A DNA stretch of 64,000 bases from assembly GCA_004431415.1 (NCBI GenBank), contig QPMI01000579.1, positions 124,001-188,000 on the forward strand, written 5' to 3'. This DNA is from Cyanophora paradoxa CCMP329 (Eukaryota; Plantae; Glaucophyta). Positions within the stretch are counted from its first letter, which is position 1, and every line of letters begins with the position of its first letter. The translations under genes and the position numbers were made by a program. Below, piece by piece: positions 1-64,000 of this stretch. The notes under the pieces were generated by a model that was given only the letters and a program-made list of their open reading frames with translations, was not told the DNA's origin and ran no database searches.

Positions 1-40
1 CGCGCACCCGCCCCGCCCCGGCCCGATCAGCACCCCGCAG

Positions 41-3404: not shown

Positions 3405-3934
3405 TCAGCTCTCCTGGACGGGCGGCAGAGGCACGTCGCTGACCTGCGAGCTGCGGCGGCGGTCGAGGCGGGCCTCGGAGCGCGCCGGCTCGGCCTCGCG
3501 GCGCCCGTCGGGGCCCGCCCCGTCGTACTCCTCCTCCTCGCCGACGTCGTCCAGGGGGGCGCCGGCGCCGGCGCCGGGGCCGATCTGCTGGTCGAGGACG
3601 GAGAAGAGGTGCGCGAGGGCCTTGTTCTCCTGCAGGAGCTCCTGCCCCGACTTGCGCCTCCCCTGCCGCCCCGCCCCCGCCGGCGCCGCGCCGCCCGGCT
3701 CCGGCGAGCCGGCCATCACCGGCACCTGCAGCTCCACCGGCTGCAGCGACGCCCGCCGCATCGCCCCTGCGCGCACGCCCCGCCGGCGTGAGCCGCTGCC
3801 CCGCCCACTGAAAGCTCCCCGGGCGGGGTTCGCACCTGGAACCATGGCGCTCAGCACCGAGTTACGGCGCCACGCAGCATCACCGCCGGCCTTTGACTGC
3901 CGAGGCGGTCAGGGGCAGCCGCGAAACAAGTGGG

Positions 3935-3972
<38 letters not shown>

Positions 3973-5049
3973 GGGTAGCCGGCGCACGGTGTTGGAGGCG
4001 GCAGAGGGCGGGCGCTCGCGCTTCGCGATGGAGGGGCGGCGGGGGATCATCGCCGGCTCGACAAGCGTGTCGCCGGGAGCCGCCCCCGGCTGCTCCGGAG
4101 CCCGCCCCTTGCCCTTCCAGGCCTCGGGGTCGTACGCTGCGCCCCGCTCGCGATCGCCAGCCGCCTCCGGCTGGTCCTCGGAGCCGGAGACGGCGCCCCG
4201 CGGGCTCCGCGTCGTCCCCGAGGCGAGGCTCGAGCGGCGCGTCGGGATCGGCGGCAGGTCGATGAGGCTCGTGAGCGAGGGCGTGATCATGCGCGTGACG
4301 TCGGGGTCCCGTGGCGGGGCGAGCGGTGCCGAGGCGGCGATGCTCGCCGCGAGGTCCGCCGCCTCCCGCGCCGAGCGCGCCGCCGCGGAGGCGGCGCGCG
4401 CCGAGAGCTGCGCCGCCTCCGCGGGGGTCGTCGTCACCTCCGGGATGGCCTTGGGGCTCTCCCCGCCCTCCCCGCGCCGCGCCGCCCGGCCCGGCGTGGG
4501 CGTCGTGCGGCCCCGCGAGCCCGGCGAGCGGGGCGAGCCGGAGCCCGAGGCCGAGCCCGGGCGCGGGGAGGCGGCCCTGCCCGCCTTCGCGGCGGGGCCG
4601 GGGTCGGGCCCGAGCATGGCGGCGATGCCCGAGCCGGCGAGGGGGAGGTCGAGCGGGTCGGGCGACTCGGCGCCGCCGCCGCCGTCGGGCATGACGCGGG
4701 GCGTCTTCGCGAGGCGGAGCGAGAAGTTGGAGATGGAGACGGCCATCGGGTTGCCCCCGCGCTTCGAGCTCGTCCCCACCGAGCTGCTCGAGGCGGAGCG
4801 CGAGTCGCGCGCCCCGGCCCCGGCCCCGGCCCCGGCCCCGGCGGCGCTGCCGGAGAGGGCGGCGGCGACCTCGGAGGCGGAAGGGGGCGGCGAGGCCCTC
4901 TCGCTGCGGTTGAGGATCTCGAGGAGGCGCGGGTCGGCGTCGAAGGATGGGTCCTTGAGGTCCCACGGCCCCTGCGGCCCGATCGACCACGTGAAGGCCT
5001 CCGGCTCCCGCACCTCCTCGTGCTTCCTCGGCCTCCGCTTGCGGCGGCG
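3405..5049 (-). other. Cytoplasmic tail of the giant receptor (about 490 aa, low complexity/disordered)
   Basis: Follows the stop-transfer sequence RRRKRRPRK. It is encoded by the 3' part of exon 5276-3988 plus exons 3896-~3836 and 3766-3405. It is A/S/P/G/R-rich with no recognisable catalytic domain. Confidence 0.75.
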
Positions 5050-8000
5050 GTAGATGACGGCCCCCGCGATGCAGAGCGTGCAGCCTCCGGCCGCCACCAC
5101 CGCCACGACGACGGGGATGAGGATGGAGGCGCTGGAGCCGGCCGCCGGCGCCGGCGTCGGCGTCGGCTCCTCGGGCGGCAGCACGGCGGTGCTGTTGAGC
5201 GTCTTGTTCGTCTGCACCACCTCGAGCCCCGCCGCGTACGAGCGGATCGCCGTCAGCACGCCGTCAATTTTGCTCACTGCGCGTTCACCCGTCAGCGCGC
5301 GGAGCCGGTGGGGCCGGAAGCGCGGCCGGCGAGCGCACCGCCGAAGCTCGTGAGATGGTCGGCGGAGCACAGGATGTAGCTGCAACCGGGCATCAGTCAT
5401 CGTACGCCAACCTGAGATTAGCGGGGAGTGCGGGGCAGGCGCGGACCGGGCGAACTTCCCGACCTCCGGATCGTCCACCTCGATCATCTCCTCCTTGAAC
5501 GAGAAGCTGCGCCCGAGGGAGGCCCGGGGTCAGCGGCGCGAGCGCAGAAGCACAGCTGGCAGTGAAAGCATCACTCACCCTGCAAGCCCGTCTTGAGGGA
5601 TCGCCATCCACTGTTTCTGCTCCTCGTTCCAGTACACCAACGCGACTGACGATGGCGTTAGCCGAACGCGCGTCGAGGATCGCCGACCGCGACACAGCCA
5701 ACTCACTCAGGTCATTTTCATTTATGCTGCCGCGCGTGATGGGCATGGCCATCTCGATCCTCGCCGTCAAACCTTTGACGGGAGTTTTCGTTCCGAGCTT
5801 CACTTCGATGACGGGGCTCGTGATCTCCCTGCGTATGCAGGAAGGTGAGCCGTGCGCTGTGATGTCAGGGAACCCGCGGTTGCGCACAGCGTCTTGTTGG
5901 TGCGGATGGCCGGCAGAATGGACCCGTTGACGACGATGGTCTCGTTCGCGGTCTTGATCGTCGTGTTACCCGCCTGGCTGAAGTTCGACAACGCAGTTGC
6001 CGCCTGGCTCAGCGGCATGGGCGATTTCTTGAACTGAACGAACGAAATCGTCCAGCCGGGATCTGCGCCACAGACGCATTCGTAAGCATGGTCGCCGAAA
6101 TGCGGCCTCTGCGACAAATGACTGGGCACCTTCCGGCTCGTGCTTCTGGACGAGTTCCGTCGCCTCCTTCGGGATGCGAACGCGGCTGGCCGGGAGGCCT
6201 TGCGCGCGGGCCTGCCACACCTGCTTCTCCTCCCCCTCCTTGTGGTTCACATGGCAAACTGCGAGCGAAAAGCGAGCAGCGCAGTACGGTGAGCAATGAG
6301 AGCGCTACGAACTGCGCGCGCAACGAGAACGCTGAAGCTCAAACGTACCTTTCCCGTCTGCGTTCGTTTGAAGTACGCCGAAAATGAGCAAAAATAAAAT
6401 AAATCAGTCGATGGCATTATAGCAAGCTCGACACTGCAGCTGTTTGAAAAACCTCTACGCACATGTGAGAGCGAGGTTTGGCGAAGCGTCCTGCTTGAGA
6501 ATATCGGAGCACACGCCGCAGTTGCTGTGAGAACTGATGAACACCTGCTCGACAGCGCCTTTGTGAGCCGATGGCGAGACGCGATCTTGATCTCAAAGAG
6601 GTGATAGGTGCAAAAGCGGACCGAGATGGCTTCCTTGCACATCTTGTACAGCTGGCTCGTGTCCACGAGCTCGGGCTTGAAGAACTGTGAGCTCGCAAAC
6701 GAGTCGAGCGCCGTTGTCACAAGCTGCGAAGAGATTTCAGGTGTCACAGATGTGGTATCTTTGAGCAACGCGACACAAGCAAGCTTCTCGCCTTCCAGAG
6801 CTGGTTCAGCGCCGGGCAACCTTCGACCTTCTTGAAAGACTCCAAAATGATCTCGGCTGCGCACGATCCAGTTATGATCATGAACATCGGTTTCTCGCCC
6901 GCGCATGGCGCCGGGGCGCACCGAGCGTCTGCGTGGTCATGTTGTTGGCGACCTGGGGCACGGGCTTGGCGAGGACGAGGGCGAGGACGGAGGCCTGCTC
7001 GAGGGCGTCCACGTCGCCCCCGTCGACGATGTCGCGGAACGCCTTCGCGAAGGCCGCCACCGAGTCCGCCGCCAGCTTCTCGAACATCTTCCGCTTGGCA
7101 TCGTCCATGGGCGCCGCGCCCGAGCCTGCGCCCGCGCCCGAGCCCGAGCCCGAGCCCGAGGCAGAGCCAGGCAGCGGCGTCGGGGTGGCCCCCGCGCCTG
7201 AGCCGGAGCCTGCAGACCCCGATCCGGATCCCCCGCCAATGACGTCTGGGTCCGGGGGTGCTGGGATCGCGTTAGAGAAGCGGGCTGGGGAGTCTGGAGC
7301 GGGGGCGACGCACCCGAGTCGGCGAGGCTGCGGGCGAAGTCGCCGAGCATGTCGGTGACGCCGGTGACGGCCTGCAGGGCCTCCTCCGCGGAGCCGCCGG
7401 ACGCGGCCGCGGCGACGGCCGCGAGGGCTTGCTCCGGGGTCGCCGCCACGACGCGGACGGGCCGGAGGACCGACAGGACGCTCGCGTTGCGCGTGTCGGA
7501 TATCTCGACGGCGAGCTGTGCCGTCTCGTTGCCGCCGAGGGGCGAGAGCAGCGCGACGATCTCGGAGGAGACCTTGGGGGACGTGAGGGGCAGCCACACG
7601 CCGCTGCGAGGGTCGTATTGCTGCAGCGCGTCAGAGGCGGGCGTGACGACGTCGTTTGGAGGGGCGGGGCTACCTTGAGCTGGTAGCGGAGGGGCGTCTG
7701 CGCGTCGACCCAGTCCTCGCAGGTGGCGCGGAAGAGAGTCTGAAGGGCGACGCCCTCGGCGGGGCTGACGGCGCAGCGGCCGCCGGCGGGCGGCGTGTTG
7801 AGGCCGAACTCGAGGGTCGACTCGCCGGCAGAGAGGGCCCCCACGAGGACCGTCACAGTCGCGCTGTAGCGCACGCCCGGCGAGAGGAGCTCCACCGGCA
7901 GGGTCACGGCCGAGCTGCTCGCCGTGGTGCGCGCGGCGCGGCCCGAGAGGTTGAGGTTCTGGCCGGGCGGCTCGGACCAGACGAGGGGGAGGAGGAGCCC

Positions 8001-11000
8001 CGCGGCGTCGTAGCCCGGCGGCAGCTTCACGGAGGCCTCGAGGACGACGTCCTCGAGGGCGGAGAGGAGCGTCGGGTCGTTCGCCCCGCCGTTCGCCTGC
8101 GCCGCGCCCCTCAGCAGCGCTCGAAGGAATCGAGGAATGCAGCGCGAGCGGCGCGGGGACCTTGATGGAGACGACGGGGACGTCGTTGTTGGAGATGCCG
8201 ATGGTCTGCGTCGTCGTGTCCACCTGGCCGTCCAGGCCGAAGGAGAGGTCCGCCAGCGCGGCCTGCCCGGAGAGCACGCTCTGCAGGCCCGCCTCCGACA
8301 CCGTCTCGTTCGCCTCCGACGCCAGCACCGTAAACGTGTGCAGCGAGCCGATGGGCAGGCCGGAGAGCGCTCGGAGGCGCCTCCCGGCGCCGCCGGTGCC
8401 GAACGTCGCCGGGTTGACGTCGAGGAGCGGCGTCGGGAGCCACTCCGAGCGCCAGAGAATGTTCTCGGCGAGCGGCGGCTTGTTAGGCTCCGTGACGAGC
8501 CAGCAGTAGAGGAGCGGGATGGTGGGGTCGTCGAGCGAGCGGCTGCGGGAGGCGTCGAGGGTGAAGGTCCGCAGAGCGGATATTTTGCGCGACGACCCTG
8601 CCCCGCGCGTCAGCTCCGCCTCCAATTCGCGCATGCACAGGGAACATTCGTACCTCCCTCGAGCTGCGCGACGACGGGCTGGGCGGGGACTTGCAGGTAA
8701 ACGACGGCCTCGGATACCGCCGTCTCGTCCTCCTCCAGCGCCGCCGTGAACTTGAACTTGAACTGCCCGCGCCGCGGCAGCAGCCCCGGCGGGATCTTCA
8801 GCTTGTTCGTCGTCTCCTTGTCGATGATGTCCTGGACCTTCGGCGGGACGGGCATGTTGGCGCTCACGACGGACCAGCCGTAGCGGATCCCGGTCGTCGC
8901 GTTGTCCGACACGATGGCGCCGCCGGCGATGATCGTCCGCTGCGCCGTCGCGCGGAGCTCGACCGCCTTGCCCTTCGTCGACTTGACCGCGGACCCGCCG
9001 AGGATCGCGATGCGCGGGACCTCCTTCTCGGCCTTCAGGACGCTGACGACCTCCCTGTACGTCGTGTTGAAGGCGAGGCTCGTCGTCGTCACTGCCACAG
9101 AGATCCGCGTGCCGGGGGGCAGCGCCCTGGGCACGGTGAGGACTCTGCTGCCCGAGCCGACGAGACCCGAGAGCGCCGCCGTGTTGTTCCTGGCGTTCGC
9201 CTCGGCGACGGCTTCGGCCAGCACCGCGGGGCACGGGTCGTTGAGGCACTCCCACGCGAGGTTCACCGCGTGCCCGCCAAACCCGGCGACCGGCTTTGCC
9301 GTAATCACGATGGGCTCAAGAGGCGACACGATGCCGAGGTACTGCGCACGTGAGACTATCAGCTGGCGGCAGAGGTCTAGAGCGGCGGACAGTGATGGGC
9401 CGCACCGAGACGGCGACTTCCAGAGACGGGACCGAGCCTGGAGCGATGCCCACCCTCCCCTCGAACGGCACGCCGTCCTCGGCGTCCGGCGTCAACTTCG
9501 GCACGAACTCGAGGCTGTCGCCAGGCTTGATCGTGTAGCCTGCAGCCCGGGCGTTAGGCGATCTTCCGCGCGAAAAACGCCGCGTTTTCGCACGCACCGG
9601 CTCCGAAGTCGACCCGGAGAGTGTCGTCCGATAGCCATAAAACCGTTGCTCCTGCGCGCGAGTTTCAACACTTTTGTCCGAATATTTACCGCTGCCATCC
9701 ACGACAAATTGACAGCGCGCGGCGCACCTTCGCCGAGTTTCGCGAGCGTGGACGGCGCGAAAACGTCGCTGGCGGCGCCCTTCTGATTTGCCCCCGGCTC
9801 GCTCGCCTGCTTGACGGGCTTGTCGAACGTGATTTCCAGGCTTGTCCCGAGCGGGCTGTACAGCGCCGACTCCACCTTGAGACCTGAAATGCGAATCATG
9901 ATTAATCAGTCGGGGAAATGAATGGAGCTCGAAAACAATTCCGAACTTGGCAGGACCGACAGCGAGAAGCCGTCCAGAGTCGCCGAGCTGCCATCCGCAA
10001 AGGTGACGGAGATGGGCTTGTCGCCGGCGGTCGTCGGCCCGAGGACAAAGACTAGTGCCGTCTCGTTCAGGAGGTACGCCGACTGGGCGCGCTGGACTCC
10101 AACAAGCACAGTCGGCTCCGAGAAGAAGCCGGTGCCGAAGACCGTCACGGGGCGCGCGCCTCCCGCGCCGATCAATGCGGGCTCAACCGAGGTGATCGCC
10201 GTGTCGACGAGCGTGAGGTTCGACTTCACCGTCGCGACTCCTGTCCTCGGCGAAATAATGGAAATGTCGTGCGTTCCAGCGGCGAGTGTGTTGGCGGGCA
10301 CGCTGAGAGCGACCGCACCAGAAACATTGGCGCCACTCACGGCCTTCCCGCCAATGCTGTACGTGCGCCCCGGGTCCGGGCTGAGGAGCCCGCTCGCAGC
10401 GATGGTGACCGTCATGGACCCGGCGGATGGCCCGCGCTGAGGCCAGACGGAGTCGATGCGTGCCGGCGAATTCAGATCCAGCAAGCCGCTGAGTGGGACC
10501 GTCTTCATGAAGCTCGAGTGCAGAGTAAGAAGAACCGGGCCCTTTGGAAGGGAACCTATGGTGGCCGGGAGGGAGACACGGATAGCGGTCGTGTTTACGA
10601 CTGAAGCTCCGGTTGCGTTCAACCGGGGGGATCCTGATGTCAGGCTCTCCACAGACGCCCAAAGACTGGTGTCTCCTACGGCAAAGTTGGAGCCCGAGAC
10701 AGTCAACTGGAATGCCATGTTGAGCGGCCCATCGGTCGGGGAGATGTTTCTGACGGTGATGTTTCCTGTCGCAAAAAATCAGGATCATGATCAGCGACAT
10801 CGAATTTTGCTGCAAGCGGAATTCGCACCGGCAAGGAGTGAAATTCCATAAGGCAGAACGGCGCGCCCAGTTCTCGCAGAAACAAGTTCGAGGGGGTACA
10901 CGCCGATAGGAATGCTGAGCCGCGGGACGTTAAATCGGACGGCCGACACGTTCAGAACGGAAGCAACGAATGAGAAGCCGCCGATGAAACCAGTCATTGT

Positions 11001-14000
11001 TGCGTCGTTGGGAATGAATGGACCGCCAGCAACAATGACGCTGGTGCCGGCGGTGGCGCTGAAGGCAACGGGCTCGGCACTCGACGCGACGGTGGCAGGG
11101 TTGACTCGGAACGATTGCGCAAAGACGCCGACTCCAGTACCGGGGCTGCGGATTACAACGTCGTACAGCCCCGCCGCGACCGCCACGTTGACGGGCACAG
11201 CAAGGGATGATGCGCTTTGCGGCAGGACGCCACCAGGCGCGGAGACCTCTGTCCGGTTGAAGAAGACGCGGAGACGTTCCGATAGGCTGAAGGGCGTCGC
11301 CTAGAGCGCGGCGTTAGCAACAGGCATTCTTCGTGAGGCAGAGAGACTCGCGCACCGCGTCCGCCACGATCGTGAGAGTCAAGGATAGCGCCTCGGGGCC
11401 GTCGGCTGGTGAGACGCTGGCCGCCGTCCGCGGGCGCTCTCCGACCACGGTGATACTCTGCTGCACGATGCCGACCTCGGGCACAAAGACTCGGATGGGA
11501 TACGTTCCCGGGTGCAAGAACGAAACGGGCAGGACGATTTCAATCCGCAGAGAACCGTTTCCGAAGCGCTCGATATTCGCGCTCGGTGCTAGCCAGGCAC
11601 CTGAGCCGATGTCTACAAGAACGGCTCTGGCGAGAGAGGTCAGATTCTGAGGCAGGCCAACGACGTCGAGGACGATGCGATTCAGCACTGCATTGGATAC
11701 GACAGTGTCGAGCATTGGCGCCAACGCCGGTGGAGGCGTCGCGACGACGAGAACTTGCAGCGCTACGGGCGGGAATCTGAAGCCGGGGAAATAGAGCGTA
11801 ATTGTCTGGAAGCCGGGCTGAGTGCCAGCGCCGATGTTGCAGACAATCGAATCGCTGCCCGCCCGATGGACGGCGGAGATGAAGCCCCCAGAAATGGTGG
11901 CCGTGACGTCGCCGAGGTTGAGGTCAGGCGTGTACTCCAGTCCGCCGAATCGAACCGTGGCGTTCGTACCCACTCCGCTCGAAATGACTTCATCGAAGAA
12001 AAACGTCACCGAAACATTGCGCCCGTAAATCACGACGAATTCAGGGACGACCGAAGCCTCAGTCAGATTGTAGATCATCTGGAGAGGTCGATTGATAATT
12101 AATTGCTGAGGCCATTACTCGAGCAACACTGATACGCACCTCCAAGTCGTATATTCCGACGGGTAGAGGATCCGCTTTGATAAATACCCGGATAAGATTG
12201 CCGGTAATCGAGAAGTCCATGCGATGGCGCGACGCCAGTGTGGTGTGCAAGAGTTGAACGATGAGAAGGTTCGGGTTCCACGGCGAAGGAGGGGTAGCGA
12301 TGGACACATCCAACTGTGTTGTGCTATTTCCAGCCGTTGATCGTATTATTGAACGATGGGCATCCACTGACGTTGCGTTGCGGTCGTTGCTTGCCGACAC
12401 GACGTGAAGAGCGCGAAGCTTCGACATGGCAGGCTGATCGGCTGTGACGATCCGGAGGTCGTATGTGCCTGCTGGAGCGCCTTCCGTCTGGACACGAATC
12501 CTGATCTCATCCGAGCCTGCATAATTGATGCGTAAGTGCATCGCCAAGCGCAGCAATTTAGATATCCGTACCCAGGCGCCGAACTTCGAGGACAGTGAGC
12601 GAAGGAGCCGTGGAGAGGCTTGCGAGTGCAGTCGATGAATCCGGCAAGATGATGGATGGCCTCAGAGTGACAGTGATGGAGCCGTTAAATTCAGGACGAA
12701 GCCCCGTCAAGACAACAACGGTAGTAGAATTCGCTTTATTGCTCACAACAGGGTCCGCCACCGAGACCACCTTCGGCACTGCGCCGCCCGGGCTCAGTCG
12801 GGCGAAACGGTTTACGCTGCCGACGCAGCGGGGCCTGCGCTAGTCTCTCCCCGCGCAGCGCGAGTGGCGGCTTGATCTCACCTTCTGCGTCCACCACCCG
12901 GACGGCGTCGTCGAGCTTCGCCGTCCCCTGCACCGGCGACACGACCTGCGGCACCCCGTCGGCCCAGCCCGCCCACCGCGGAAGCTGCGCCCGGCGCCGC
13001 GCACCCGCAGGTCGTACACGCCGGGCGGGGCGCCGGCCAGCACCGTGAACTCCAGCGTGTCGTTCGTGCCCGGCACCGGCCGCACGCCCGCCACCGCACA
13101 CGGGCCAGCGTGACCGTCGCGTTCGCGAGCGCCGCGGCGTCCTCGACGCCGGCGACGCGGACGTAGGTCGTCAGGTTCGCCTGCGTGGATACAACGCGAT
13201 CCTGCACGCCTCCCGCGGCAAGTCCAAGCGGGCCTAGGCCCGTCACGAGCACCGCGTGCGGGAGCCGCGCAGCCGGCTGCGTTCCATCCGCCGTCGCCAC
13301 CGTGAGGTCGTACTTGCCGGGCTTTGCACCGGCGGTCTCGACCTCCAGCTCGAGCGTGCCGTTGTCTGCCGCGCCGCAGCCGGCAAGCGTCAGCTGCCGC
13401 TTCGCGCGGTCGGACCGGCAGCCCGAGTTTCGCGGGCGCACCGAGGCGGGTCACCCGCAGCACGGGGAGGGCCGGCTCGTCAGGGCTGGGCAGCGAGTGC
13501 GGCGCGGGGGAGCCGTTGGGCAGCGTCGGAGATCTCGTCAGGGAGGCGACGAGCGGCGCGCTCGTGTTCGGCACCAGGCCCGCGACGTTCACGCCAACCG
13601 TCGAGATGTTCGCGCGATTGCTGACGACAGGGTCCGCCACCGAGACCACCTTCGGCACTGCGCCGCCCGGGCTCAGTCGGGCGAAACGGTTTACGCTGCC
13701 AACGCAGCGGGGCCTGCGCTAGTCCCTTAAATAATTCAAGCTGTGCTAAGCCACTCGAAATATTTGCTGATAAAGAAGAACCCAGAACAATGTATACTCC
13801 TTTTGTCTGACATGTGAAACGCCCATCAGCAAACGTTGATGTCCCAAGCCTTGTAAAACCAGTTGTATAACTGTTAAATTTAATAAATGTGCTCCCTGAT
13901 CCTGGCGGCTTGATCTCACCTTCTGCGTCCACCACCCGGACGGCGTCGTCGAGCTTCGCCGTCCCCTGCACCGGCGACACGACCTGCGGCACCCCGTCGG

Positions 14001-47000: not shown

Positions 47001-49260
47001 ACGCGTCGATCTGGAGCTCCTGGATCGCGATGTCGCCGGTGACGCCTGCCAGCGAGTCGCCCCAGAACAGCATCTTCCACGAGTTGTCCGGGTTGAAGTT
47101 CGCGATCGGAGCCTCGTCGATCGATGTGACGTTGTTGATCTTGACCGTGACGAGTGCGTTGGCAGACGAGTCGGGGTCCTCCCGCACGTGGATGGCCAGC
47201 GTCTGCCATGTCCGCCCCGTCGTCGACGTCTTGGCGTAGCCGTGACGGATGTACGAGGTGCGATCAATCACCGAGGCACTTTGGCCCGCGTAGGATTGCA
47301 GGCGGACGTTCAGCCGGTTCTGCGACAAGCTCGAGAGACCCCACCAGGGGGCGTAAAAATTGCTGCGCGTCACGAGAGCAGTGGACGCCGGTCCGTAAGA
47401 GAAGCCGAGACCTGTCCCGAGGACCTTCTCTGTGACGCAAAAACCATGATGCATTCAGCCGCGCGCCATGCATATGGTTACGACTGGAACGCAAATCGAT
47501 GTCCGCGCACCGGGCGTGTTGCAGCAGATTCGGAACTTTGCATAAACGCTGCAATGCGCAAATAAGTAATTTAATCGCCCATGAAAACGGATGGGTTCTG
47601 AAAGCACCTGAAGAACCTCGGGCTTCTGGGCAAATCTACAATGAAGGCCCCCAGACTGTTTTCAACCCCGTTCGGATGAAGCTGCAGGTACCCCGGTGCG
47701 GTTGAAGCAAGTCCAGCAAGGAAAGTGCGATAGGGGTGGGGGCTGGTTCCATCGAAATTTGAGTACCAAAGCGTCCGTCCAGGCTGGAAGGAATGCGTAA
47801 GTGCGAGTGCAGAATCGACGGCGAATACATGCAAAACTCAAACCTTGAAAGTAACAACGAAACCGACGTTCCACGAATCATCCAAGCCAGTCAGTTGTCC
47901 TGAGATTGTCGGAGCGAGCCAGATAGAAACGTTCGACCCATAAACCTGCAGACGATACATGTTTAATATCCGAGCTTAAGCGATCGTTGGAACAGGCCAG
48001 GTGTCGTTAGATGAAAATATGAAAGAAATCACGAACCGGGAACGCTACGCCATTCCGGACAACGGACACGTTGCAGATGGTCGATGCAGTGGGCGACGGC
48101 GCGACGATCGCAGGCGCGCAGGCGATCGTCGAGCTGTTCGATCGGACCACCGAGACGTAACGGAAGCCTAGTGGAAGGATGGCGGTTCCGAAACGCCCGC
48201 TCTGCAAAGCCACGTCAAAGAGGCCCGGAACGTTTTCGCGTCCATTCAGCTGAGCCGAGATTGCAGTTGAATTGATGAATGTAATCTGAACAGAAAACGT
48301 GAATATTGTTGCTAGAAGCGATATCTAATTTGCAGACCTTGGAAATGAGCGTCCCGCCGATGTAAAGAGAAAGAGAAGTGTCATTCAAAAAGTTTGTGCT
48401 GTGCACGTGCTGTCAAAATCGGCTGGACGAGAGCAGTGGAACGTATTCGCATACCCGGTGATCGTGACAGTGATTGCATTGCCCCAATTCGTCCGCCTTG
48501 GACTCACGTTGTCAATTGTGGCCTCTGTGCGCTGCGATCAAAGGAGGCGCAGACCATTGATTGTGAGAACGTACTTGGGTTGACAATGTAGAGTGTGGGG
48601 CAGACTTCGTTGATCTCGCTTCCGAATATGAGACGTACAGCGTACTTTCCTGGCGTCAGGCTTCGCGGCGGAAACACGCGGACGGCGCGGGAGCCCAGCC
48701 CGATGAACGTGATGTCGCTGCTCTCCGCCGCGGTCGAGTTGAAGAAGACCGAGCCGGCGTAGAGGTCCACGCCCTGTACTTGGATGAACCTGCCCCCGAC
48801 GGGGCCGTCGAAAGGGGCGAGGCCAGTGAGGCGCGGCTCGCCGACTGTGATCTCGGTCGAAGCAATGGACGTGCCGCGGTAAGCAACCTTCAGCGCTCCA
48901 GCGCCAAGAGGGATGTGCCCTTTCAAAAAAGTTAGAATAAAAGAATTGACGCTATGTGGTTTGTGGATAAGCCGCACAGTATTCTGTCGATTCTAATCTG
49001 AAGTCCGAAATGCCAACTTCGTCCGCATATCCATAAACAGCATTTGAACCAAAGAGGGCGAAGTTCCTGATCATGATCGAAGGAAAATAAGGACACAGGC
49101 AGTGACAGTCAGAATGCATAACCACTCAAGCAAAATTCACCAGTCGGCAGCAGGTTGCCAGGAAGGCAGGGGTATTGAAGGGACCAGTACTCGGCTGCGC
49201 CACGTGACACGAAGGAGAGCGCCTGCATCCTTTCCTGAATCGGGCAAGATCTCAACCTGG

Positions 49261-49293
<33 letters not shown>

Positions 49294-55200: not shown

Positions 55201-58200
55201 CGTCAGCGCACCTCAGGGTTTCGCCGGTGGTCACTAAGAAGAAGTTCCGGCCGGTCTGTGGTGCGCACTGCGCAGGCGCACATGGTCATAGCCGAGCACG
55301 CGGAATCGATCATCAGCCGCACGCGTGCGAGCGCAAAGTTCATTATATTAACACGGACCTGCATTATGCTTGTCGAATCCGGCTCGCCAAGAACGACGAG
55401 GGCGCGGGGCTGAACCAGAGTCCGCTCGACAGAGACGGTGCTCCCGCTCGAACTCGTAAGCACGAATGTGCCTCGCAGCACCAGGTCCCATTTGCTCTGC
55501 TCGCAAGACGCTCGTCTTAAAAACAGCACTTGGAATGCACATGCTGCTACCAGAGAGCGACTGCAGCTGCAGCTAAAATACGCACCGGCAAAAGCTCGCG
55601 TCCCGTCGCATTGAGAGGGAAAGAAAAGGAGTTGCTTGCTGTGGTGATAGGACCCGCCTGGAGCCGGACGATGCCAGTCGTGTTCGCCACAGATACATTG
55701 AAGATGCCACTCGCGCTCCCTTCCAACGTGGCCCCTGAGCCGACATGATTAGACAATTATCCTCAAGTGCAGGAGCTGGATGTTCCGTCATCACTGCACA
55801 GCATTCGCACCTCGGACTGTCGCGATGAGAGCTGCTGGGAGGGAGACGTACGACAGGCGCGGGATTGAGAGCTCTGCCGACACCGTCCAGATTGAAATGG
55901 CCGCGCTTGTCACGACGGCAGCCGGGATGGCGTCCGGGTCGCTGAAAGCGGCTGCCACATCGCAGCTGGTCGGCGAGCCCGTGGCGTTGAGCGTGAATCG
56001 CAGCTCCGGGAGACCGCTCGTGCCATTCACAACGACGATGTGTCCGGCAGCAATCGATCCCGCCACGCAGGACGTAATTTGCACTGAGAGCAGGGCCGGA
56101 GGCACGAAAGTGCGGATTCCGCTCTTCGAAGGCACGATGGTGCAATCGACAGTGGAGTTGACCGCAATCAGGTCACTCCCGCAGGAAGCATTGACAGCGT
56201 CCGGCACATCTGCACGAAAGGTCGGCGAGCGGCATATAAAAATACCAACAGCGAAGTATCGCGATCCAGACCCGAGACAGCGATGACCGACGTGTTCGCG
56301 ATGGGTGAGCCTCGATAAAGGGCTACAAGCCGGCCGCTCCCCAACGGCGCGAAGACTGGTGCGGACCCGCGTGCGCGCGGTAAATGAGCAAGAAATCCAG
56401 ATATACAAAGGCTGCAGCGCCAGCTTAAGCGCACCCGGCTCTGTTGCCGAAATCTGCACGTCGGAAATCCCCGCCTCGGTTGCGTACCCGTACCCGGCGT
56501 TGGATCCAAAAAAGGCGAACGCCCTGTGCGGCGCGGTGAGTAGGCATTGAAATTGAGTGAATGGCGGCAACGGAGTTCAACGGAGGTTTCACCAGTCAGG
56601 CCGAGGGCTCCACCGCGGGATCGAAATGCTCGGGACCACAATGCGTCCCCGCCACGTCACCCTCAGCGATGCTCCCGCGGGATTCGCTCTATCAGGAGAG
56701 ACCTCAACCTGGCAGGGGGGCATAATCAAACACTGTGAGGACTGTTTCCCCGCCCAGGAGCGCCACACCTCCATGGAATACATCGGGTCATTCGTCAGAG
56801 CGTTGTCCGTTGCAGACGTGTAGAGACCGGCGGACTGGTAATGGACGATGTTGCCGAGGTCATCGTATACATGGACGTAATGCTGTCCCGCTCGCGCCCA
56901 CAGCGTGTAGAGGCGGACCTAGACGCCGACATCAATGTCGTACCTCACAACGCCCGCACCGCACACAGCCGATAATGGTTCGAACGAAGCCCATCATAAC
57001 GCACCGTGAGCCCTGCATTTCGCGAGCGAATGTGCCCTTTTCCGTCGTTGGCGAGAACCGAATCCGGCGCCGTCACGTTCCACCCTAGAGGAAACGCGCC
57101 GATGGAGAACGCGAATCCATCAGACGAGTATCCGACGGAGAAGCTCGGCCCGGTGCCGGTCTTGCCGCAGCACAGCTTGTACCGCCACGAGGCCCTGAAG
57201 AACCGCGGCACGCGTGCTGGCGCAAACACCCACGCCCCGCCTGCCCGCGGTAACGCCGGCACAAGCTGAAGGTACGGGCCGGTGGCTGCCGAGACCACGC
57301 GCGCAGTGCCCGTGAGCGAGGATCCTGACCGGGCGAAGCTCCACGCGCTCGTGAAGTTCTCGGCAAAGACCAGCGAGGTCGGCGCAAACGCGAAGCTGAA
57401 GCGCGACGCGAAGCCGCCGAAAGCGGAGACGGACCCGACGAGCGTCCCATCGGCGATGACGCGCAGGTCGCCCGCGTCGACGGCCACTGGAGCACCGCTC
57501 CGGCGCAGCTCGAGGGTGCAGTTGTTCGCAGAGATGTCACTGCTGGAGGCCAGCAGCCGTCTGAGGGGACAGTGCAGTCGCGATGACAAGTCCGGCGCTG
57601 CGCAGTCGGAGCACACGCGCGCGCTTTCGTCAGCCGCAAGGTGCGCTTTCGAAACCCAAGCGCGCATCAGGCACCTCCATCGAGCCTTACGGCGGCAATG
57701 GTAGAGCCGTTGCCGGCGGATCCGTCGGTCAGCGCCACGACGGCGGCTCCGGCAGCCGCGGGCGCTGCAGGGTGCCGGTCCTGGCTCTCGACTCGGACTG
57801 GCAACGGAAGAATAAAAAGAATCAGATGCACGCAAACTCCACCACACAATCGCGAGAATTTAACACAACAGAAGAGCGCGAACCAGACTGGACTACCACC
57901 TCGTTCGTGGCTGCCGTAGACGTGCCCGGATCAGACAGCAGAAGGAAGCCCCTGCGAGATGTCGAGCAGGCCGACGCCAGTCCACGTCAGATGGAGGACG
58001 AGCGATTGGCAGACTCATTTCAAGGATCGCACCAGTTCGGCGACGGCGACCAGCCAGTGAAGCGTTGATGGATCGCCCCGTCGGCTCCAGCATAGGAATC
58101 TGGAGTGATGCTAACCCCATCTGCTCGCGCAAGAAATCGATTTCTCGACAGAAATCAGAACGATCGAGCAGCGATGGCGAACCCATCTCAATCGAATACA

Positions 58201-61200
58201 CAGCATCCGCATCAGCATTTCTATGCAAAAAAGATCGTCAGCTTTCGAATATTCGTCTACTTGAAGCACAAAAAGCAAGCCGCCGCACGAGTCGCGATGG
58301 ATCGAGAACTTCACCACGCGCCATCCGCTCGCCGGAACTGGCACCTGGGCGCGGAGTCGAGGACACGATTACGCTCGAAGCCAATTCGCGAGGAAGGAGG
58401 CGGCGCACCGCTCCGTAGTGGTGGTTGTTGATGAGCGTCTGCTGCTTCCAAACGTACACGTACTTATTCGGCTCGTTGATGAAGAAATTGATCCCCACGT
58501 CGGAAGCGAAGAAGAGCGTGTGCGCCGAGCTCAGCGATCTCGATTGGAATATCTGATCGTTGACGTCCGCGAAATCCACAGGCACGTTCCCGTAAACGAA
58601 CGCCATCGGCACGGTGGAAATCTTGAATGTGACGGTCGCTGCGTGAACGCTTCAGTTTCCAGGCGCCAGTCCAAGCCATGCATGTGCGAGATGCACCTAT
58701 GAACGTGTCCGGCGAGCCTGCCTGCGGCCGGAACGTGTAGAAGCCGCGGCATGCCGACCCGGACGCGCCCCTCGGGCACAGCGTCAGGTTCTGGCCCGCC
58801 GCCACCGCCGAGCCCGCCATCGACTCCCCACGGGAGTACTGCCAAGGCCCGCCCCGCGAGAAGTTGCGCTCGAAGACCAACCGAGGCTCCCCCAGCGACA
58901 CGTTGAACGAGACGGTCCCCGCTCCGCCCGACCGAGGGAGAAGGGGCGACGGCACGCCCGCGAGCATACCGGCCGCCTGCACCGACATGAATGCAGGCGA
59001 CCCAAGCGATGGGGCCCCCTCCAGGCGCAGCGTCGCGTTGCAAGAGAAGCTCGTTCCAGCCGCGGGGCCGGCCGGCCCCCAGGATGCGATGTCGAGGCCC
59101 GCGCCGCAGCTCAGCGACGACGTCGCATCGGCGCCTGTTAGAACGCGGAGCTGTGCATAAGCAACGATCGGCAAGCGCGCGGCGGACGCGCACCGCCGAT
59201 GACGATGCGGTTGGATGAGACGGCCGCCGGGAGCCGCACAGTCAGGGTCCCGTTGCGCAGCACGGAGTCTCTCAGGCTCGCGTCGTACTCCTCGACCATC
59301 AGGTCGGTAATCAACGTCTCTTCCGGGTACGAAGCCACCGTGTCGGCGTAGAGCTGTCCCCAAGACACTCAGCGAGTCCAGTCGCACATGAGCCACTTCG
59401 AAGGTAGCGCGAACGCTCACCCGGAACGTCCAGCCAGGCGCGGGGTCCCAGGTGGTGCGGTCCGTGATCAGGACGTCCTCGAGCGTCGTCTCGCCATCAA
59501 CCACGACGGACACGACGACGCTGCCCGCAGCCGCGCCGGGCCGGACGTGCACTGCCGCCGAGCGCCACACGCCTGCAGCCACAATGAGCATGCCAGCGTG
59601 GAAAAAACTCGAGCCACGATCAAGGCGGGTGTCCGCGGGCGCCCGCTATCGTACACGCATGCGCACCACCGGCAGCACCGGACGCGATGCTGCTCGTCGC
59701 AGTTCCGCCTTGCGCGTGCCGCGTCGTCGGATGCCATATCGACAAATAGCCGTATTTATAGCCTGCAAGCGCGCGATGATCATCATGGCATGAGTTGAAA
59801 ACTAATCGAATCTCAACACAGGGCGGGTCGGCGAGATCGCCGTGAGTGCTTTCTGGCGTGTTCCCGCGCTTCTAAATACGTAGCATTTCAAGTACAGGGC
59901 GCACCCACGTAAGTTGCGAAATGAACTGCGCAATTATGCACGTTGGTCGCAGCCATGGAACACATGATTATTGCAGCGGATCGAGACGGGTTCGCGGCCA
60001 GCTACAGCCTGTGCGCACCGGACAATCGATCGCCCTGCATGGCGAGACAGCCAAGAGCTCCGGTGCAGTACGGAGCGGACGACGCTGTCGGCCCGTTGAA
60101 CGTGTCGTTGATACGCCGCGCTGTGCCGTACGCGAACGTGAACCCGGTCCCCCCGTCTGGTTGGCGGCCCGCGTCAGATTCAGCAGCGGCGCACGGCGCG
60201 AGTGCACACTCGTGAGGGAGTTGATGGACATGAAGCGAAAGCTCGCAGTGAAGAAGCGCGGCGGCGGCCCTGCCGGCTCGAAGACGAACATGCCCTCGCT
60301 CGGCGCGCCGCGCACGAGCCGAAGCGCGCCGTCTTCGGGCGACAGGGCGGCGGAACCCGTGATCGACCACCTGCGAGTTGAAGGAAGAGCTCAATAAGCT
60401 CAATGTGCAGGCTCTCGTATCTGCGACGAGCCCATCAGCACACACCGGTACGAGGTGGGAGGGCCCGCGGTGGTGTTGAAGCTCTCCTTGAAGACCACGA
60501 ATCCGTAGGGGCCGCGCTCGAAGGCAACAGAGAAGTCGAAGCTCGGCGAGGCTGCTACACGAGCGAGGTCCTGCACAACGCGTCCGCGGAGCCCTCCCGA
60601 GAGCTCCGCCGTGAACGGCAGCAGGACGGGATCGAAATGGATGCTGTTGCTCGCCAGCCGCGTCTCCAGCCGGCAGGTCGCCACAGCTGCCTCTCTGATG
60701 GCGGGGAGTGGAAGAACTGCAGGAGTGCACTGCAGCGTGCTCGAGGCGTCCGGAGGGCGCACAACCCAGAGCGGGTACGGCGTGCTCTGCACTTGCGTTC
60801 CGGACGCGGCGTGGCTGTAGAACAGGGTCACGCTCCCGCTGGTGATGGATGCGGCCGCGGTGAAGTTGAACCGATACTCGCTGATGATCTGGGACCCCAA
60901 GCCTGACGCGAACGGGACGAAGGCCCCAATGGAGCCCAGGCCCGCGGAAGAGAGGCTCGCATTGACGGTGCCGAGCGGAGCAAAGATCGGCGTCCCCTGC
61001 CGGGCCGGCCGGGCCGAGCACAAGACGCTTGCGTTCACCTGCACGGCAATCTTTGCGCAGTGCACGACGACCTCCGTAGGCAGGTCTGTCGGCGATTGCA
61101 GTGTGAGGTGGCTGTGCCCAACGAGCCCGACAAACAGGGGTATGCACCAGAAACGATGAAGCTCGTGGAGAGGGCCACAGCTGCGCCGCGCATCATTGTG

Positions 61201-64000
61201 ACCGTCACGCGCCCTGTCTGCGCGATCGACGGCACGACTGGCGCAAAGGTCGCATTTGAGTACGCCATCCCGAATTCGTCCCCGCTCGTGAAAACGACGT
61301 TCGCAACCAAGGAGCCCGCCTGCAGCCCCTCCGCCGGGATCGTCACCCTCGCCACCGCGTAGACATTTGCGGGAGTTACGTCGACAAATATCGGCCCGCC
61401 CGCCTTCTTCGCGGCGTATGTGCACACCACGGCTTCCGCAATCCTGGCCTGCTGCGGGCACAGCAGCTGCGACGTAACTGTCGCGGGCAGCGGGGTTGCA
61501 GCATCATCCGGCGTGTCTGCACTCGCGGTTAGGCAGATCCTTTCAGATATGCAACGGTCCGATGGTCACGCGCGCTGTTCACTCACCAGGGTAAAGGAAG
61601 ACGCCGATGGCAGCTCCGGCGGGCCAGCCCGCCACCCCGAACCGCAGGCTCGGGTAGTTCTCCGGCAAAGTGTAGTGCATGCCTGCGCATTGACCATCGA
61701 CTTCCGGATCTCCAGGGATCGCGATCGTCTGCACGACCGCGTCAGCTCCCCGGCCCGTGAGAAACGCAGCAAGCATTGCGCTCACCTGGTTCGCATTTGT
61801 CCTATTTATCAGGTAGACCGGAGGTGTTCCAGCAATCGTATGATGCTTCCAGGATGTGTGGATTGCGAACGGCGTGCCCCGCAGATCAAGGTTCAGGATG
61901 CCGTCGGTATCGCAAGGTCCACCCCACGCTGGATAGTAGGCGTTGGACCCGGTAACAGCGCTGACGAAATCCATGGCGTTGACAGCAAAAGTGGGTCCGA
62001 GAGCTGTTGCGGGGTAGTCAAATCGCAGTCCCCAGAAATAATACCGGTAGGTGCCGCTGTAGATGTTGGCATAGTTTGATACCCCATACGCTCCGCCCAT
62101 TGGGAGAGCAAGGAAGTCGTTCGTCGAAAAATAAAAGAAGCGGTGTTGAACGTACTCGCCCGTCTCCTGCGCGACGGCACGATGGCGTGAGATAATCCAA
62201 TGCAAAATCCATTGCCAGAAGCTCGAGGCAACGAGAGTACCGAGTTCCTGAAAGCGTACATGCGCGCAGTGCCTGCTCGGAGAAATCGTGAGCGAACGGA
62301 CGCGGGCACGAATTCCGATGATATCCCCTTGACGTCTCACCCGTGACATTCACGAGAACAGAAGCTATTACGCCCACGGAAGCAAATGAAGCGGTAAGCG
62401 GGGCTGTTCTCAGAGCATCCGCGATTGACGCCGGCGATCCGACGAACGTGTACGTGACCTCGAAAACGAAGCTCGACCCCGAGGCCGCCATCAAAGAGCG
62501 ATCAACGACCGCCGTCAGTTTCGTCGCCAACATGCCAGGGTGGCTGAGCGTGACGTTCGACGCGAGCACCGAGACGGGCTCCTCGCGCCACCGCGTGGTC
62601 AGGTTACACCTGATTGCACGGCCATCATCGTGAGCGACAAAAGCACGAATAACGACTCTGCAGACTGCAGACGTCAGCGCACCTCAGGGTTTCGCCGGTG
62701 GTCACTAAGAAGAAGTTCCGGCCGGTCCGTGGTGCGCACTGCGCAGGCGCACATGGTCATAGCCGAGCACGCGGAATCGATCATCAGCCGCACGCGTGCG
62801 AGCGCAAAGTTCATAATATTAACACGGACCTGCATTATGCTTGTCGAATCCGGCTCGCCAAGAACGACGAGGGCGCGGGGCTGAACCAGAGTCCGCTCGA
62901 CAGAGACGGTGCTCCCGCTCGAACTCGTAAGCACGAATGTGCCTCGCAGCACCAGGTCCCATTTGCTCTGCTCGCAAGACGCTCGTCTTAAAAACAGCAA
63001 TTGGAATGCACTTGCTGCTGCCAGAGAGCGACTGCAGTTGCAGCTAAAATACGCACCGGCAAAAGCTCGCGTCCCGTCGCATTGAGAGGGAAAGAAAAGG
63101 AGTTGCTCGCTGTGGTGATAGGACCCGCCTGGAGCCGGACGATGCCAGTCGTGTTCGCCACAGATACATTGAAGATGCCACTCGCGCTCCCTTCCAACAT
63201 GGCCCCTGAGCCGACATGATTAGACAATTATCCTCAAGTGCAGGAGCTGGATGTTCCGTCATCATTGCACAACATTCGCACCTCGGACTGTCGCGATGAG
63301 AGCTGCTGGGAGGGAGACGTACGACAGGCGCGGGATTGAGAGCTCTGCCGACACCGTCCAGATTGAAATGGCCGCGCTTGTCACGACGGCAGCCGGGATG
63401 GCGTCCGGGTCGCTGAAAGCGGCTGCCACATCGCAGCTGGTCGGCGAGCCCGTGGCGTTGAGCGTGAATCGCAGCTCCGGGAGACCGCTCGTGCCATTCA
63501 CAACGACGATGTGTCCAGCAGCAATCGATCCCGCCACGCAGGACGTAATGTGCACTGAGAGCAGGGCCGGAGGCACGAAAGTACGGATTCCGCTCTTCGA
63601 AGGCACGATGGTGCAATCGACAGTGGAGTTGACCGCAATCAGGTCACTCCCGCAGGAAGCATTGACAGCGTCCGGCACATCTGCACGAAAGGTCGGCGAG
63701 CGGCATATAAAAATACCAACAGCGAAGTATCGCGATCCAGACCCGAGACAGCGATGACCGACGTGTTCGCGATGGGTGAGCCTCGATAAAGGGCTACAAG
63801 CCGGCCGCTCCCCAACGGCGCGAAGACTGGTGCGGACCCGCGTGCGCGCGGTAAATGAGCAAGAAATCCAGATATACAAAGGCTGCAGCGCCAGCTTAAG
63901 CGCACCCGGCTCTGTTGCCGAAATCTGCACGTCGGAAATCCCCGCCTCGGTTGCGTACCCGTACCCGGCGTTGGATCCAAAAAAGGCGAACGCCCTGTGC
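3405..64000 (-). CDS. Giant polycystin-1/REJ-like single-pass cell-surface receptor/adhesin (lectin-like + Ig/IPT + REJ + GAIN/GPS + 1 TM), 5'-partial, >100 short introns
   Basis: Beta-rich, NxS/T-rich exon fragments lie continuously on the - strand from 64000 to a TGA at 3405-3407 (...PLPPVQES*). Wherever I spliced manually (parts of 3.4-5.7, 12.8-25, 41.3, 44.4-45, 47.8-48.2 and 50.2-52.5 kb), short introns restore the frame, apart from two 1-nt deletions in repeat copies. I saw no internal promoter, signal peptide or true terminal exon. Not every junction was checked. Confidence 0.8.
3936..3971. repeat. Poly-G/poly-C tract in an intron
   Basis: About 36 consecutive G inside intron 3987-3897. 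Similar tracts lie at about 239-271, 29317-29339, 31142-31156 and 49262-49293. Confidence 0.9.
5050..5124 (-). other. Single transmembrane helix
   Basis: ILIPVVVAVVAAGGCTLCIAGAVIY, preceded by a PEEPTPTPAPAAGSSAS stalk and followed by RRRKRR (type I topology). Confidence 0.9.
5339..7450 (-). other. GAIN domain with GPS motif (HL|TSF)
   Basis: Spliced micro-exons give ...VIEVKLGTKTPVKGLTARIEMAMPITRGSINENDLIALVYWNEEQKQWMAIPQDGLAGFSFKEEMIEVDDPEVGKFARYILCSADHLTSFGV. The H-L-T codons are at 5357-5349 in exon 5379-5339. A helical region lies upstream (6100-7450). Confidence 0.8.
7450..9900 (-). other. REJ (PKD/REJ-like) module
   Basis: Characteristic motifs LAWEC, YGWSVVS, FTLDASRSRSLDDP..LLYCW, LLSPGVRYSATVTV and NTPPAGGRCAVSPAEGVALQTLFRATCEDWVDAQTPLRYQ. 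Confidence 0.8.
12748..17681. repeat. Intragenic tandem array 1: about 5.6 near-identical 880-bp units (3 exons + 3 introns, 214 codons each)
   Basis: Unit starts (PKVVSVADP) at 12779, 13658, 14697, 15577, 16457 and 17335, giving periods 879, 1039, 880, 880 and 878. Introns are 76+59+103 nt, so 880-238=642 nt is coding. Confidence 0.97.
13728..13902 (-). other. 175-bp AT-rich foreign insertion in one repeat intron, encoding a C1q-like peptide fragment
   Basis: Replaces the 16 nt CCCCGCGCAGCGCGAG present in sister copies (net +159). 66/175 = 38% GC, versus about 70-80% in the flanks. Stop-free on -: GSGSTFIKFNSYTTGFTRLGTSTFADGRFTCQTKGVYIVLGSSLSANISSGLAQLELF. Confidence 0.85.
20032..25330. repeat. 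Intragenic tandem array 2: about 4 units of the same 880-bp type plus about 2 units of a diverged 876-bp subtype
   Basis: Unit starts at 20424, 21304, 22184 and 23063 (type 1) and at about 23930 and 24806 (type 2; ...NRANLTTLVALAGLVP...). Type 2 shares the second half of the unit with type 1. Confidence 0.95.
32830..47790 (-). other. Array of 11 divergent L-type (legume/ConA-like) lectin-like domains, each nested in a Cys-containing Ig-like domain
   Basis: Domain starts at about 47780, 46590, 43540, 42390, 41165, 39950, 38565, 37290, 35890, 34670 and 33490. They share F.E.F...(L)GG.A.I.NG.L.LT....G.F....P..F...F.F.....GDG.SFSYG...W..V.I........W.P...W.F...A.TG......IDN..I. Confidence 0.7.
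43825..45650 (-). other. Two galactose-binding-like (jelly-roll) domains
   Basis: YSTTIDLTG..RETAYVQLQFLADDLVDDISVNG...MGTNTLTIRTWNSNFGGWNPSMLAVYVEV (about 44940-45650) and paralog FTTAIDLSGL..SAYVNISVLAQQRVDDILVNG...SRNLLTVRV (about 43825-44640). Confidence 0.6.
54330..54690 (-). other. GON-like domain (copy 1)
   Basis: DFLALP.....SNYANIY.....FWGLRFD.......VNAMDF....G.....AWGGPC...GILNLDLRGTPFAI..SW matches the GON pattern by eye. Confidence 0.55.
61801..62161 (-). other. GON-like domain (copy 2)
   Basis: Duplicate of 54330-54690 at offset 7471. Confidence 0.55.

Follow-up and report, generated by a model that had tools for sequence, protein, structure and literature searches.

The closest described systems to the locus characterized here are the sea-urchin receptors SpREJ1, SpREJ8 and SpREJ9 of the PKD1/REJ family, which carry REJ and GPS domains and one transmembrane (TM) helix and have no channel, SpREJ1 also possessing lectin domains (PMC1934368). 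SpREJ1 comprises 1,450 aa with two C-type lectins, and the family maximum is 3,716 aa. Human polycystin-1 (PC1; 4,303 aa) has a long Ig-fold ectodomain with a PKD-repeat stalk, REJ, a GAIN domain that is cleaved at HL/T (PMC4810088), PLAT and 11 TMs. Among algae, Chlamydomonas MST3 is likewise a giant single-chain surface protein that has lectin domains and a long tail, is anchored by a polycystin-related part and owes its length to repeats, but it differs in its poly-proline shaft, PKD2-like multi-pass domain and C-type lectins, and no REJ or GAIN has been reported in it. REJ/GPS or GAIN proteins are also known outside animals from Ectocarpus (Esi0130_0068), ciliates and Dictyostelium (PMC4700764, PMC3321182); unlike the protein described here, Esi0130_0068 has 1,427 aa, 6-7 TMs and no lectin. 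Finally, in bacterial PF18483 proteins and predicted protist TIG+L-lectin proteins, Ig/TIG domains space the lectin domains, as they do in Cyanophora. One of the latter, P0082 (marine metagenome, predicted protist), has 4,739 aa, 7 lectin domains and a signal peptide, and lacks REJ, GPS and TM. A literature search for a polycystin or REJ protein of Cyanophora yielded no paper.

In this work, we analyzed 64,000 nt of Cyanophora paradoxa contig tig00021234 (the window), which appears to hold a gene with the SpREJ1 plan at about ten times its size. Its predicted product, from an archaeplastid, exceeds 15,400 aa and combines 18 L-type lectin folds with GON-like domains, ~50 IPT repeats and a long tail. 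The protein resembles PC1 in its ectodomain, REJ and HL/T-bearing GAIN, but has no PLAT or 11 TMs and an IPT/TIG stalk in place of PKD repeats. The original prediction knew of no described protein with this architecture. The plan itself has precedent in SpREJ1; the novelty lies in the scale, in lectin and GON parts of bacterial type, and in the host being a glaucophyte. The protein would rank among the largest membrane proteins predicted, at about four times PC1. The features are as follows, from the upstream end of the gene to its stop.

3405..64000, minus strand: giant gene model with 201 exons, coding for ~15,400 aa within the window
57695..64000, minus strand: upstream copy of a ~7.48-kb internal tandem repeat, 98.5% identical to 50206-56529
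50206..56529, minus strand: downstream copy of the ~7.48-kb repeat
48978..64000, minus strand: lectin-fold domains 1 (C-terminal end only) to 7, by colinear exon-by-exon profile matches
61587..62272, minus strand: GON-like domain 1 (hhalign 92%, E 6.6e-7 to bacterial Pfam-GON domains)
54116..54801, minus strand: GON-like domain 2, counterpart of domain 1 in the downstream 7.48-kb copy
32835..47783, minus strand: lectin-fold domains 8-18, with an Ig-like spacer ahead of each, by exon-by-exon profile matches
43816..45656, minus strand: two mutually related beta-rich domains
32835..33497, minus strand: lectin domain 18, contained in a single exon, legume-lectin beta-sandwich
9406..32664, minus strand: IPT/TIG-Ig stalk, ~5,900 aa, ~50-55 repeats, N-glycosylation-rich, by Pfam TIG, motif count and composition
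20032..25379, minus strand: 880-bp tandem array A, unit of 214 aa with two Ig-like domains
12730..17734, minus strand: 880-bp tandem array B
16783..16784, minus strand: 1-nt deletion in a GGG run, frame shifted as assembled
13722..13902, minus strand: AT-rich insertion in an intron (262 nt vs. 103 nt in sister copies)
13105..13106, minus strand: identical 1-nt deletion in another copy that is not a sister of the first, frame shifted as assembled
7314..9341, minus strand: REJ module, ~620 aa, Pfam REJ E 7.7e-18 (7674-8096) and 3.5e-4 (8654-9341)
5339..7260, minus strand: GAIN-like region, ~400 aa, helical then beta, GPS motif at its end, by position and by inspection of the motif
5349..5357, minus strand: predicted H-L/T autoproteolysis site, motif by inspection
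5050..5124, minus strand: single TM helix, hydropathy peak 2.6, followed by a basic stop-transfer patch
3405..5049, minus strand: cytoplasmic tail, 518 aa, Pro/Ser/Ala-rich, low complexity, with many SP/TP and RxxS sites

The exon chain runs from 64000 down to a TGA stop at 3405-3407, and the splice model assigns to it 46,201 coding nt (76%), 15,400 codons and 1.6 MDa, in line with the ~15,000 aa originally predicted. Introns have a median of 67 nt and a maximum of 262 nt, with 196 GT and 4 GC donors and the consensus GTGCG/GTGAG...CAG. Since such a model is able to thread non-coding DNA, controls were run. With parameters trained on the gene's other half, the minus strand scored above both the plus strand and shuffled sequence in each of the 3.2-kb blocks. 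When a zero-cost gene break was permitted, breaks appeared at 3404 and throughout 1-3400, with 0 within 3405-64000. One giant gene is thereby supported, and the single minus-strand chain first proposed stands except for two assembled frameshifts, which we assume to be sequencing errors. As foreseen, the chain is still open at 64000, so that the window holds no N-terminus; no convincing internal signal peptide occurs within the modelled chain, and a third repeat copy beyond the window suggests a full protein of >16,000 aa. Domain searches were made exon by exon or via stored protein ids, and the joined spliced sequence was used for length, hydropathy, position and motif counts. No Rfam RNA was matched in the window.

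The order along the chain is 18 L-type (legume) lectin-fold domains, two GON-like domains, ~50 IPT/Ig domains, REJ, GAIN with HL/T, TM and tail. REJ was matched by Pfam in two exons in model order, which places the protein in the PKD1/REJ family as predicted. The modelled REJ region has 5 Cys vs. the six conserved REJ cysteines, a count made without alignment to SpREJ/PC1, and no REJ relatives were found in metagenomes. The GPS motif (Y-W..W..G-L..C-x-x-x-H-L-T-S-F) lies 55 aa ahead of the TM with HL/T intact, its first cysteine apparently missing. The predicted GAIN/GPS thus holds as a motif but drew no Pfam match on the separate exons, the region being split over 11 small exons, which accounts for the lack of HMM confirmation. 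The TM is the sole strong hydropathy peak of the modelled chain and is followed only by the tail; no PLAT was matched by Pfam in the window, and neither 11 TMs with a channel domain nor the 7TM domain of adhesion GPCRs follows GAIN. A channel-less, single-pass protein with a tail was indeed the expectation, although the accompanying statement that REJ and GAIN are normally followed by PLAT and 11 TMs is overstated in view of the single TM of SpREJ1, 8 and 9 (PMC1934368).

Dozens of Ig/IPT domains had been proposed for the stalk, and Pfam IPT/TIG matches in six exons, with ~50 repeats overall by motif count, bear this out; the gene model contains 276 N-glycosylation sequons. The ~18 lectin-like domains were recovered by exon profiles as 17 complete domains plus the C-terminal end of one more, and the loops of domains 8-18 are Trp/Tyr-rich (W+Y 8.3%). 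An AF2 model of domain 18 (pLDDT 90) matched soybean agglutinin (Foldseek E 5.5e-10, TM-score 0.65), and a profile of the lectin repeats with their bacterial relatives matched the PDB (E 6e-13). By these models, the domains have the concanavalin-A-like beta-sandwich of the L-type (legume) lectin fold. Profiles built from window sequences alone found nothing meaningful in the PDB, single-sequence AlphaFold gave a pLDDT of 33, and single-exon homolog searches returned blank or self only, being uninformative on longer relatives. The nearest relatives of the repeats are bacterial L-type lectin (PF18483) adhesin-like and predicted protist TIG+L-lectin proteins. None of the complete copies in the window has a metal-binding acidic loop (E/F-x-D-T-Y type); the bacterial relatives retain the ADG and F-D-T-Y motifs, whereas the Asp of F-D-T-Y is gone from every complete Cyanophora copy, and the loop-A Asp (Asp-Gly of the sugar site) occurs in ~6 of the 17. 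As read from the sequence, these domains have a lectin fold but are no canonical Ca/Mn lectins, and carbohydrate binding by them is at most putative; the suggestion of glycan sensing is overstated. In a quick tree, the Cyanophora copies clustered together with weak support; the tree did not resolve where the domains came from, and we make no claim of horizontal transfer.

The ~7.48-kb unit contains three lectin-fold domains, one GON-like domain and Ig-like domains. Codon differences between its copies comprise 28 synonymous vs. 16 non-synonymous changes, divergence is 1.0% in exons vs. 1.8% in introns, and frame-breaking indels are confined to introns. Judged by these differences, the copies are under purifying selection. 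The idea that they are assembly duplicates was rejected on the 1-1.5% differences with a synonymous excess. The exact repeat copy number may be wrong. Two GON-like domains, as predicted, are moderately supported via bacterial GON domains, but window exons gave no direct Pfam match; the hhalign support is indirect (102 columns) and partly circular, the relatives having been chosen by motif. The two beta-rich domains, taken originally as galactose-binding-like, had no match in Pfam, PDB or plasmid sets, so that label gained no support.

On balance, we lean towards a giant type-I membrane glycoprotein of the REJ/polycystin-1 family that acts as a long-reach tethered recognition or adhesion filament. 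Going by what is known of the family, the protein would enter the ER via a signal peptide lying beyond the window, be N-glycosylated at its sequons, and cleave itself at HL/T, the resulting ectodomain (>14,800 aa) and membrane fragment (597 aa) staying joined non-covalently. The ~50 IPT/Ig repeats would form a stalk of ~200-250 nm (at an estimated ~4 nm per domain). This stalk would hold the lectin-fold domains, whose aromatic loops are variable, several hundred nm off the cell or flagellar membrane, where they could bind surfaces, polymers or other cells in a multivalent, metal-free manner. Tension on a bound ectodomain would load the GAIN joint, upon which the ectodomain might be shed, or a signal passed via the disordered tail or a partner channel. 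Reach and valency may keep changing through tandem duplication of the 880-bp and 7.48-kb units. SpREJ1 (lectin-REJ-GPS-1TM) binds fucose sulfate polymer (PMC1934368), and PC1 undergoes cleavage and shedding (PMC4810088). The single-pass lectin-REJ-GAIN receptor plan of sea-urchin sperm would then be shared by a glaucophyte, with a bearing on the role of polycystin-1-like proteins before their joining to a channel domain.

It is possible, if unlikely, that the same protein constitutes Cyanophora's long, narrow flagellar hair (mastigoneme), a single chain with a polycystin-type anchor at its base and a length given by repeat number; the original prediction had not raised this possibility. Such mastigonemes are present on C. 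paradoxa flagella (PMC6704402), and in Chlamydomonas the ~800-nm hair length is set by one 8,572-aa chain, MST3, in which C-type lectin domains are combined with a PKD-like membrane domain and a cytoplasmic tail that is likewise long (PMC11015965). The predicted length of the Cyanophora protein is of the same order as the MST3 hair, but it has neither the poly-proline nor the PKD2-like domain of MST3 (Pro 7%, one TM). On this reading, and still doubtfully, the hair would be a single 1.7-MDa polycystin-1-like chain serving as a self-cleaving, lectin-tipped mechanical and chemical antenna. If so, the glaucophytes, a branch of the plant kingdom, would have a PKD1-type ciliary receptor, and the Cyanophora hair would be built quite differently from the green-algal MST1/MST3 hair. 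The protein is also a testable candidate for the unexplained thin flagellar hairs of an easily cultured model alga.

As assembled, frameshifting 1-nt deletions hit 2 of the 12 copies of the 880-bp repeat. The splice model had bypassed them by two 50-nt "introns" with GAG acceptors, which we reject as artefacts because the acceptors are poor and a conserved strand present in ten sister copies would be lost. Were both frameshifts real, the gene would be recently disabled in the cultured strain, or its product truncated and unanchored. Recurrence of an identical deletion despite Illumina correction of the assembly, the recent AT-rich insertion in one intron (without relatives in viral or phage sets) and the failure to find expression evidence fit such a history. 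Nevertheless, all four 1-nt indels among near-identical copies are deletions, three of them in GGG runs, the usual PacBio error pattern. Moreover, the two broken copies are not sisters, one sharing three private substitutions with an intact copy, and ~3,000 codons downstream of the frameshifts show no disablement. The deletions at 16783 and 13105 are probably PacBio sequencing errors, and real disablement seems improbable.

We give little credence to a stage-specific mate-recognition receptor resembling SpREJ1 and silent in vegetative culture, a reading drawn by analogy with sea urchin, Ectocarpus (PMC4700764) and Cryptosporidium (10.64898/2026.10.13.757955), whose male gametes bear REJ-type proteins. 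Loops that are aromatic and variable would suit such a receptor, and its silence would account for the missing transcript evidence. Against it, SpREJs are mostly expressed somatically, gamete contact does not need extreme length, and we know of no description of sex in glaucophytes.

In the published annotation, the giant gene appears as g19425, g19427, g19429, g19430, g19432 and other pieces, AUGUSTUS models whose termini lie within lectin domains or extend into introns. No transcript support turned up for the gene, the clusters of published pieces having no transcript-derived members, and the Cyanophora genome paper cautions that its gene models require curation by hand (PMC6704402). Being annotated in fragments, the protein is absent from the current proteome, and similar genes in other protists have therefore probably been overlooked. 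The giant algal genes PKZILLA-1/-2 of Prymnesium were likewise concealed by fragmented automatic models (10.1101/2024.01.29.577497); they encode cytosolic polyketide synthases and are much larger (45,212 aa), so that the Cyanophora protein sets no size record. That the region holds several independent genes, as annotated (g19425-g19434), is very improbable, for although an RNA-seq-trained AUGUSTUS run predicts separate genes and gene packing in this genome is dense, the published models break off in the middle of lectin domains, the pieces are without signal peptides or anchors, the largest gap is 262 nt vs. a mean intergenic distance of ~770 bp with ~1.2 kb following the true stop, and the zero-cost break test left the chain from 3405 to 64000 whole.

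The splice model, a dynamic program trained on the window with four places patched by eye from paralogous repeats, yielded a single minus-strand gene with 201 exons; its coding sequence in the window comprises 46,201 nt, or 15,400 codons, and closes with a TGA at 3405-3407. The window DNA is GC-rich and eukaryotic with short introns; those of the giant gene have a median of 67 nt and a maximum of 262 nt, and the product encoded within the window amounts to ~1.62 MDa. Since non-coding DNA can be threaded by a permissive splice model, continuity alone is little proof. When each half of the gene was scored with parameters trained on the other half, the minus strand exceeded both the plus strand and shuffled sequence in all blocks, with 64-87% coding. 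When stop-intergenic-ATG breaks were permitted at zero cost, none was placed within 64000-3405, and breaks were placed at 3404 and across 1-3400. Moreover, the two copies of the 7.48-kb repeat diverge by 1.0% in exons vs. 1.8% in introns, differ by 28 synonymous vs. 16 non-synonymous codon changes and confine frame-breaking indels to introns. Together, these three results support a single chain. No convincing signal peptide was found behind any internal ATG, and the modeled chain contains one strong transmembrane segment (TM). The gene of ~15,000 aa originally predicted is real, mis-annotated and striking in scale.

The C. paradoxa assembly was built from PacBio RSII reads with Quiver and Illumina correction and annotated with BRAKER1/AUGUSTUS, and its authors cautioned that gene models need manual curation (PMC6704402). 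When a profile of the lectin-like repeat was searched against 1.84 billion proteins, the three best matches were published models from this very locus (tig00021234_g19425, g19427, and g19429); g19430, g19432, and g19434 likewise belong to it. There is little support for splitting the locus into these models: g19425 begins with a Met close to where lectin domain 13 ends and terminates by read-through into an intron, g19427 ends inside an intron, and g19430 and g19432 both terminate mid-lectin domain. PKZILLAs provide a precedent for giant algal genes fragmented in annotation. The model g19434 matches the same 7.48-kb repeat segment and carries private substitutions which, given the gene order, imply a probable third copy past 64000 and a total length above ~16,300 aa; the gene start lies outside the window. 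No transcript-derived members were found in the sequence clusters of the published pieces, which is weak negative evidence.

In 2 of 12 copies of the 880-bp repeat, one G is missing from a GGG run (~16783 and ~13105), causing a frameshift. Sequencing error is favored over a real lesion in the gene as the cause: each of the four single-base indels seen among near-identical copies is a deletion, GGG runs hold three of these, and the two frameshifted copies are not each other's sisters. G/C homopolymer runs at 49262-49293 (32 nt) and 3932-3975 (~44 nt) are intronic and directly precede acceptors, and their lengths are likely unreliable.

Domains were scanned exon by exon with profiles, and comparisons used exons or stored protein records. 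Of the ~18 lectin-like domains anticipated, 17 were recovered complete and an 18th by its tail; their order is colinear. None has a direct Pfam match; L-type lectin domains of bacteria (PF18483) are closest to them. Once these relatives were included in the alignment, AlphaFold predicted a beta-sandwich with high confidence (pLDDT 90), for which the structural matches include legume lectins, VIP36, and ERGIC-53 (E 5.5e-10, TM-score 0.65), and a sequence profile also points to the legume-lectin fold. The bacterial relatives retain the ADG and F-D-T-Y motifs; in Cyanophora, the first Asp is retained in ~6 of 17 domains and the metal-binding Asp in none. Variable, aromatic loops characterize the Cyanophora domains instead (W+Y 8.3% vs. 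1.3-3.7% in the stalk). Each is a lectin-fold domain rather than a canonical metal-dependent lectin. Some loops at 33000-42000 (minus strand) are extremely Trp/Tyr-rich and different in each copy, resembling a variable binding repertoire inside one chain. Two GON-like domains are supported indirectly, through sequence relatives, and two more domains carry the provisional label 'galactose-binding-like.' Across loci L004-L023, GON domains are frequent in secreted proteins of myxobacterial, actinobacterial and chloroflexal origin, in some cases as tandem pairs.

The expected dozens of Ig/IPT domains number ~50-55 across 5,900 aa by Pfam TIG matches and motif count, and a Pfam match confirms REJ. 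A GAIN-sized region follows, ending in a polycystin-1 (PC1)-like GPS with the motif H-L|T-S-F, 55 residues upstream of the TM; by motif and position, it is a putative GAIN/GPS. The 518-aa cytoplasmic tail is low-complexity and contains neither PLAT nor channel, which together with the one strong TM bears out the channel-less, single-pass prediction. Within this otherwise disordered tail, a short amphipathic helix (~3570-3635, minus strand) may serve to bind a partner or act as a coiled-coil-like element; in PC1, a C-terminal coiled coil mediates binding to PC2.

The giant protein has the REJ and the GPS motif of the PKD1/REJ family and lacks the PLAT and 11 TMs of canonical polycystin-1, the usual sequel cited in the original prediction. 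Sea-urchin SpREJ1, SpREJ8, and SpREJ9, however, have one TM each, and SpREJ1 has lectin domains and binds sulfated fucan (PMC1934368). The combination is therefore already known, and the giant protein is built on a known plan, sharing lectin domains, a single TM and family membership with SpREJ1. REJ/GPS proteins occur in brown algae (PMC4700764), GAIN in ciliates and Dictyostelium (PMC3321182) and REJ-like folds in Cryptosporidium (10.64898/2026.10.13.757955). In the literature surveyed, we found no described protein combining all these parts, no PKD1/REJ member above ~4,300 aa and no publication on the locus. Arrays of TIG with L-lectin domains are present in predicted proteins of other protists, among them P0082, a 4,739-aa secreted protein predicted from a marine metagenome and lacking REJ and TM. 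Its gene (L001:3315-17534; also L003:10001-14839) is intron-poor, comes from a marine picoeukaryote, encodes 7 L-type lectin domains interspersed with TIG repeats and recurs in Tara-type metagenomes; in these copies, the last lectin domain, at least, retains ADG.

In GAIN proteins, autoproteolysis at HL|T occurs in the ER and leaves the two parts associated, with an ectodomain that is able to come off (PMC3321182, PMC4810088). By analogy, the giant protein would cut itself at the predicted HL|T, its halves staying associated and its ectodomain detachable. If extended, the stalk would hold the binding-domain array ~400-500 nm out (estimated at ~4 nm/domain), and the GAIN joint could be a load-sensitive release or signaling point. 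The protein most likely serves in recognition or adhesion, as a tethered filament of long reach; ligand, location and signaling alike are inferred. In a more specific version of this role, the protein might form the long, narrow mastigonemes present on C. paradoxa flagella (PMC6704402). Chlamydomonas MST3 offers a parallel: this PKD-anchored chain of 8,572 aa bears lectin domains and determines how long the hair is (PMC11015965). We consider the mastigoneme version fairly unlikely.

Three further features lie in the window:
1-1330, plus strand: 3′ exons of a convergent gene, apparently for a small multi-pass membrane protein
~1620-2190, minus strand: small gene downstream of the giant gene, with an apparent charged N-terminus and C-terminal hydrophobic anchor
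13722-13902, minus strand: AT-rich insertion of ~180 nt replacing ~20 nt of one intron copy, with a stop-free 59-codon frame

The product of the small downstream gene is SNARE-like by appearance, and its first exon has no Pfam match. The insertion has no viral or phage match; its frame faintly resembles C1q (Pfam E 0.07), reminiscent of a captured piece of some foreign gene.
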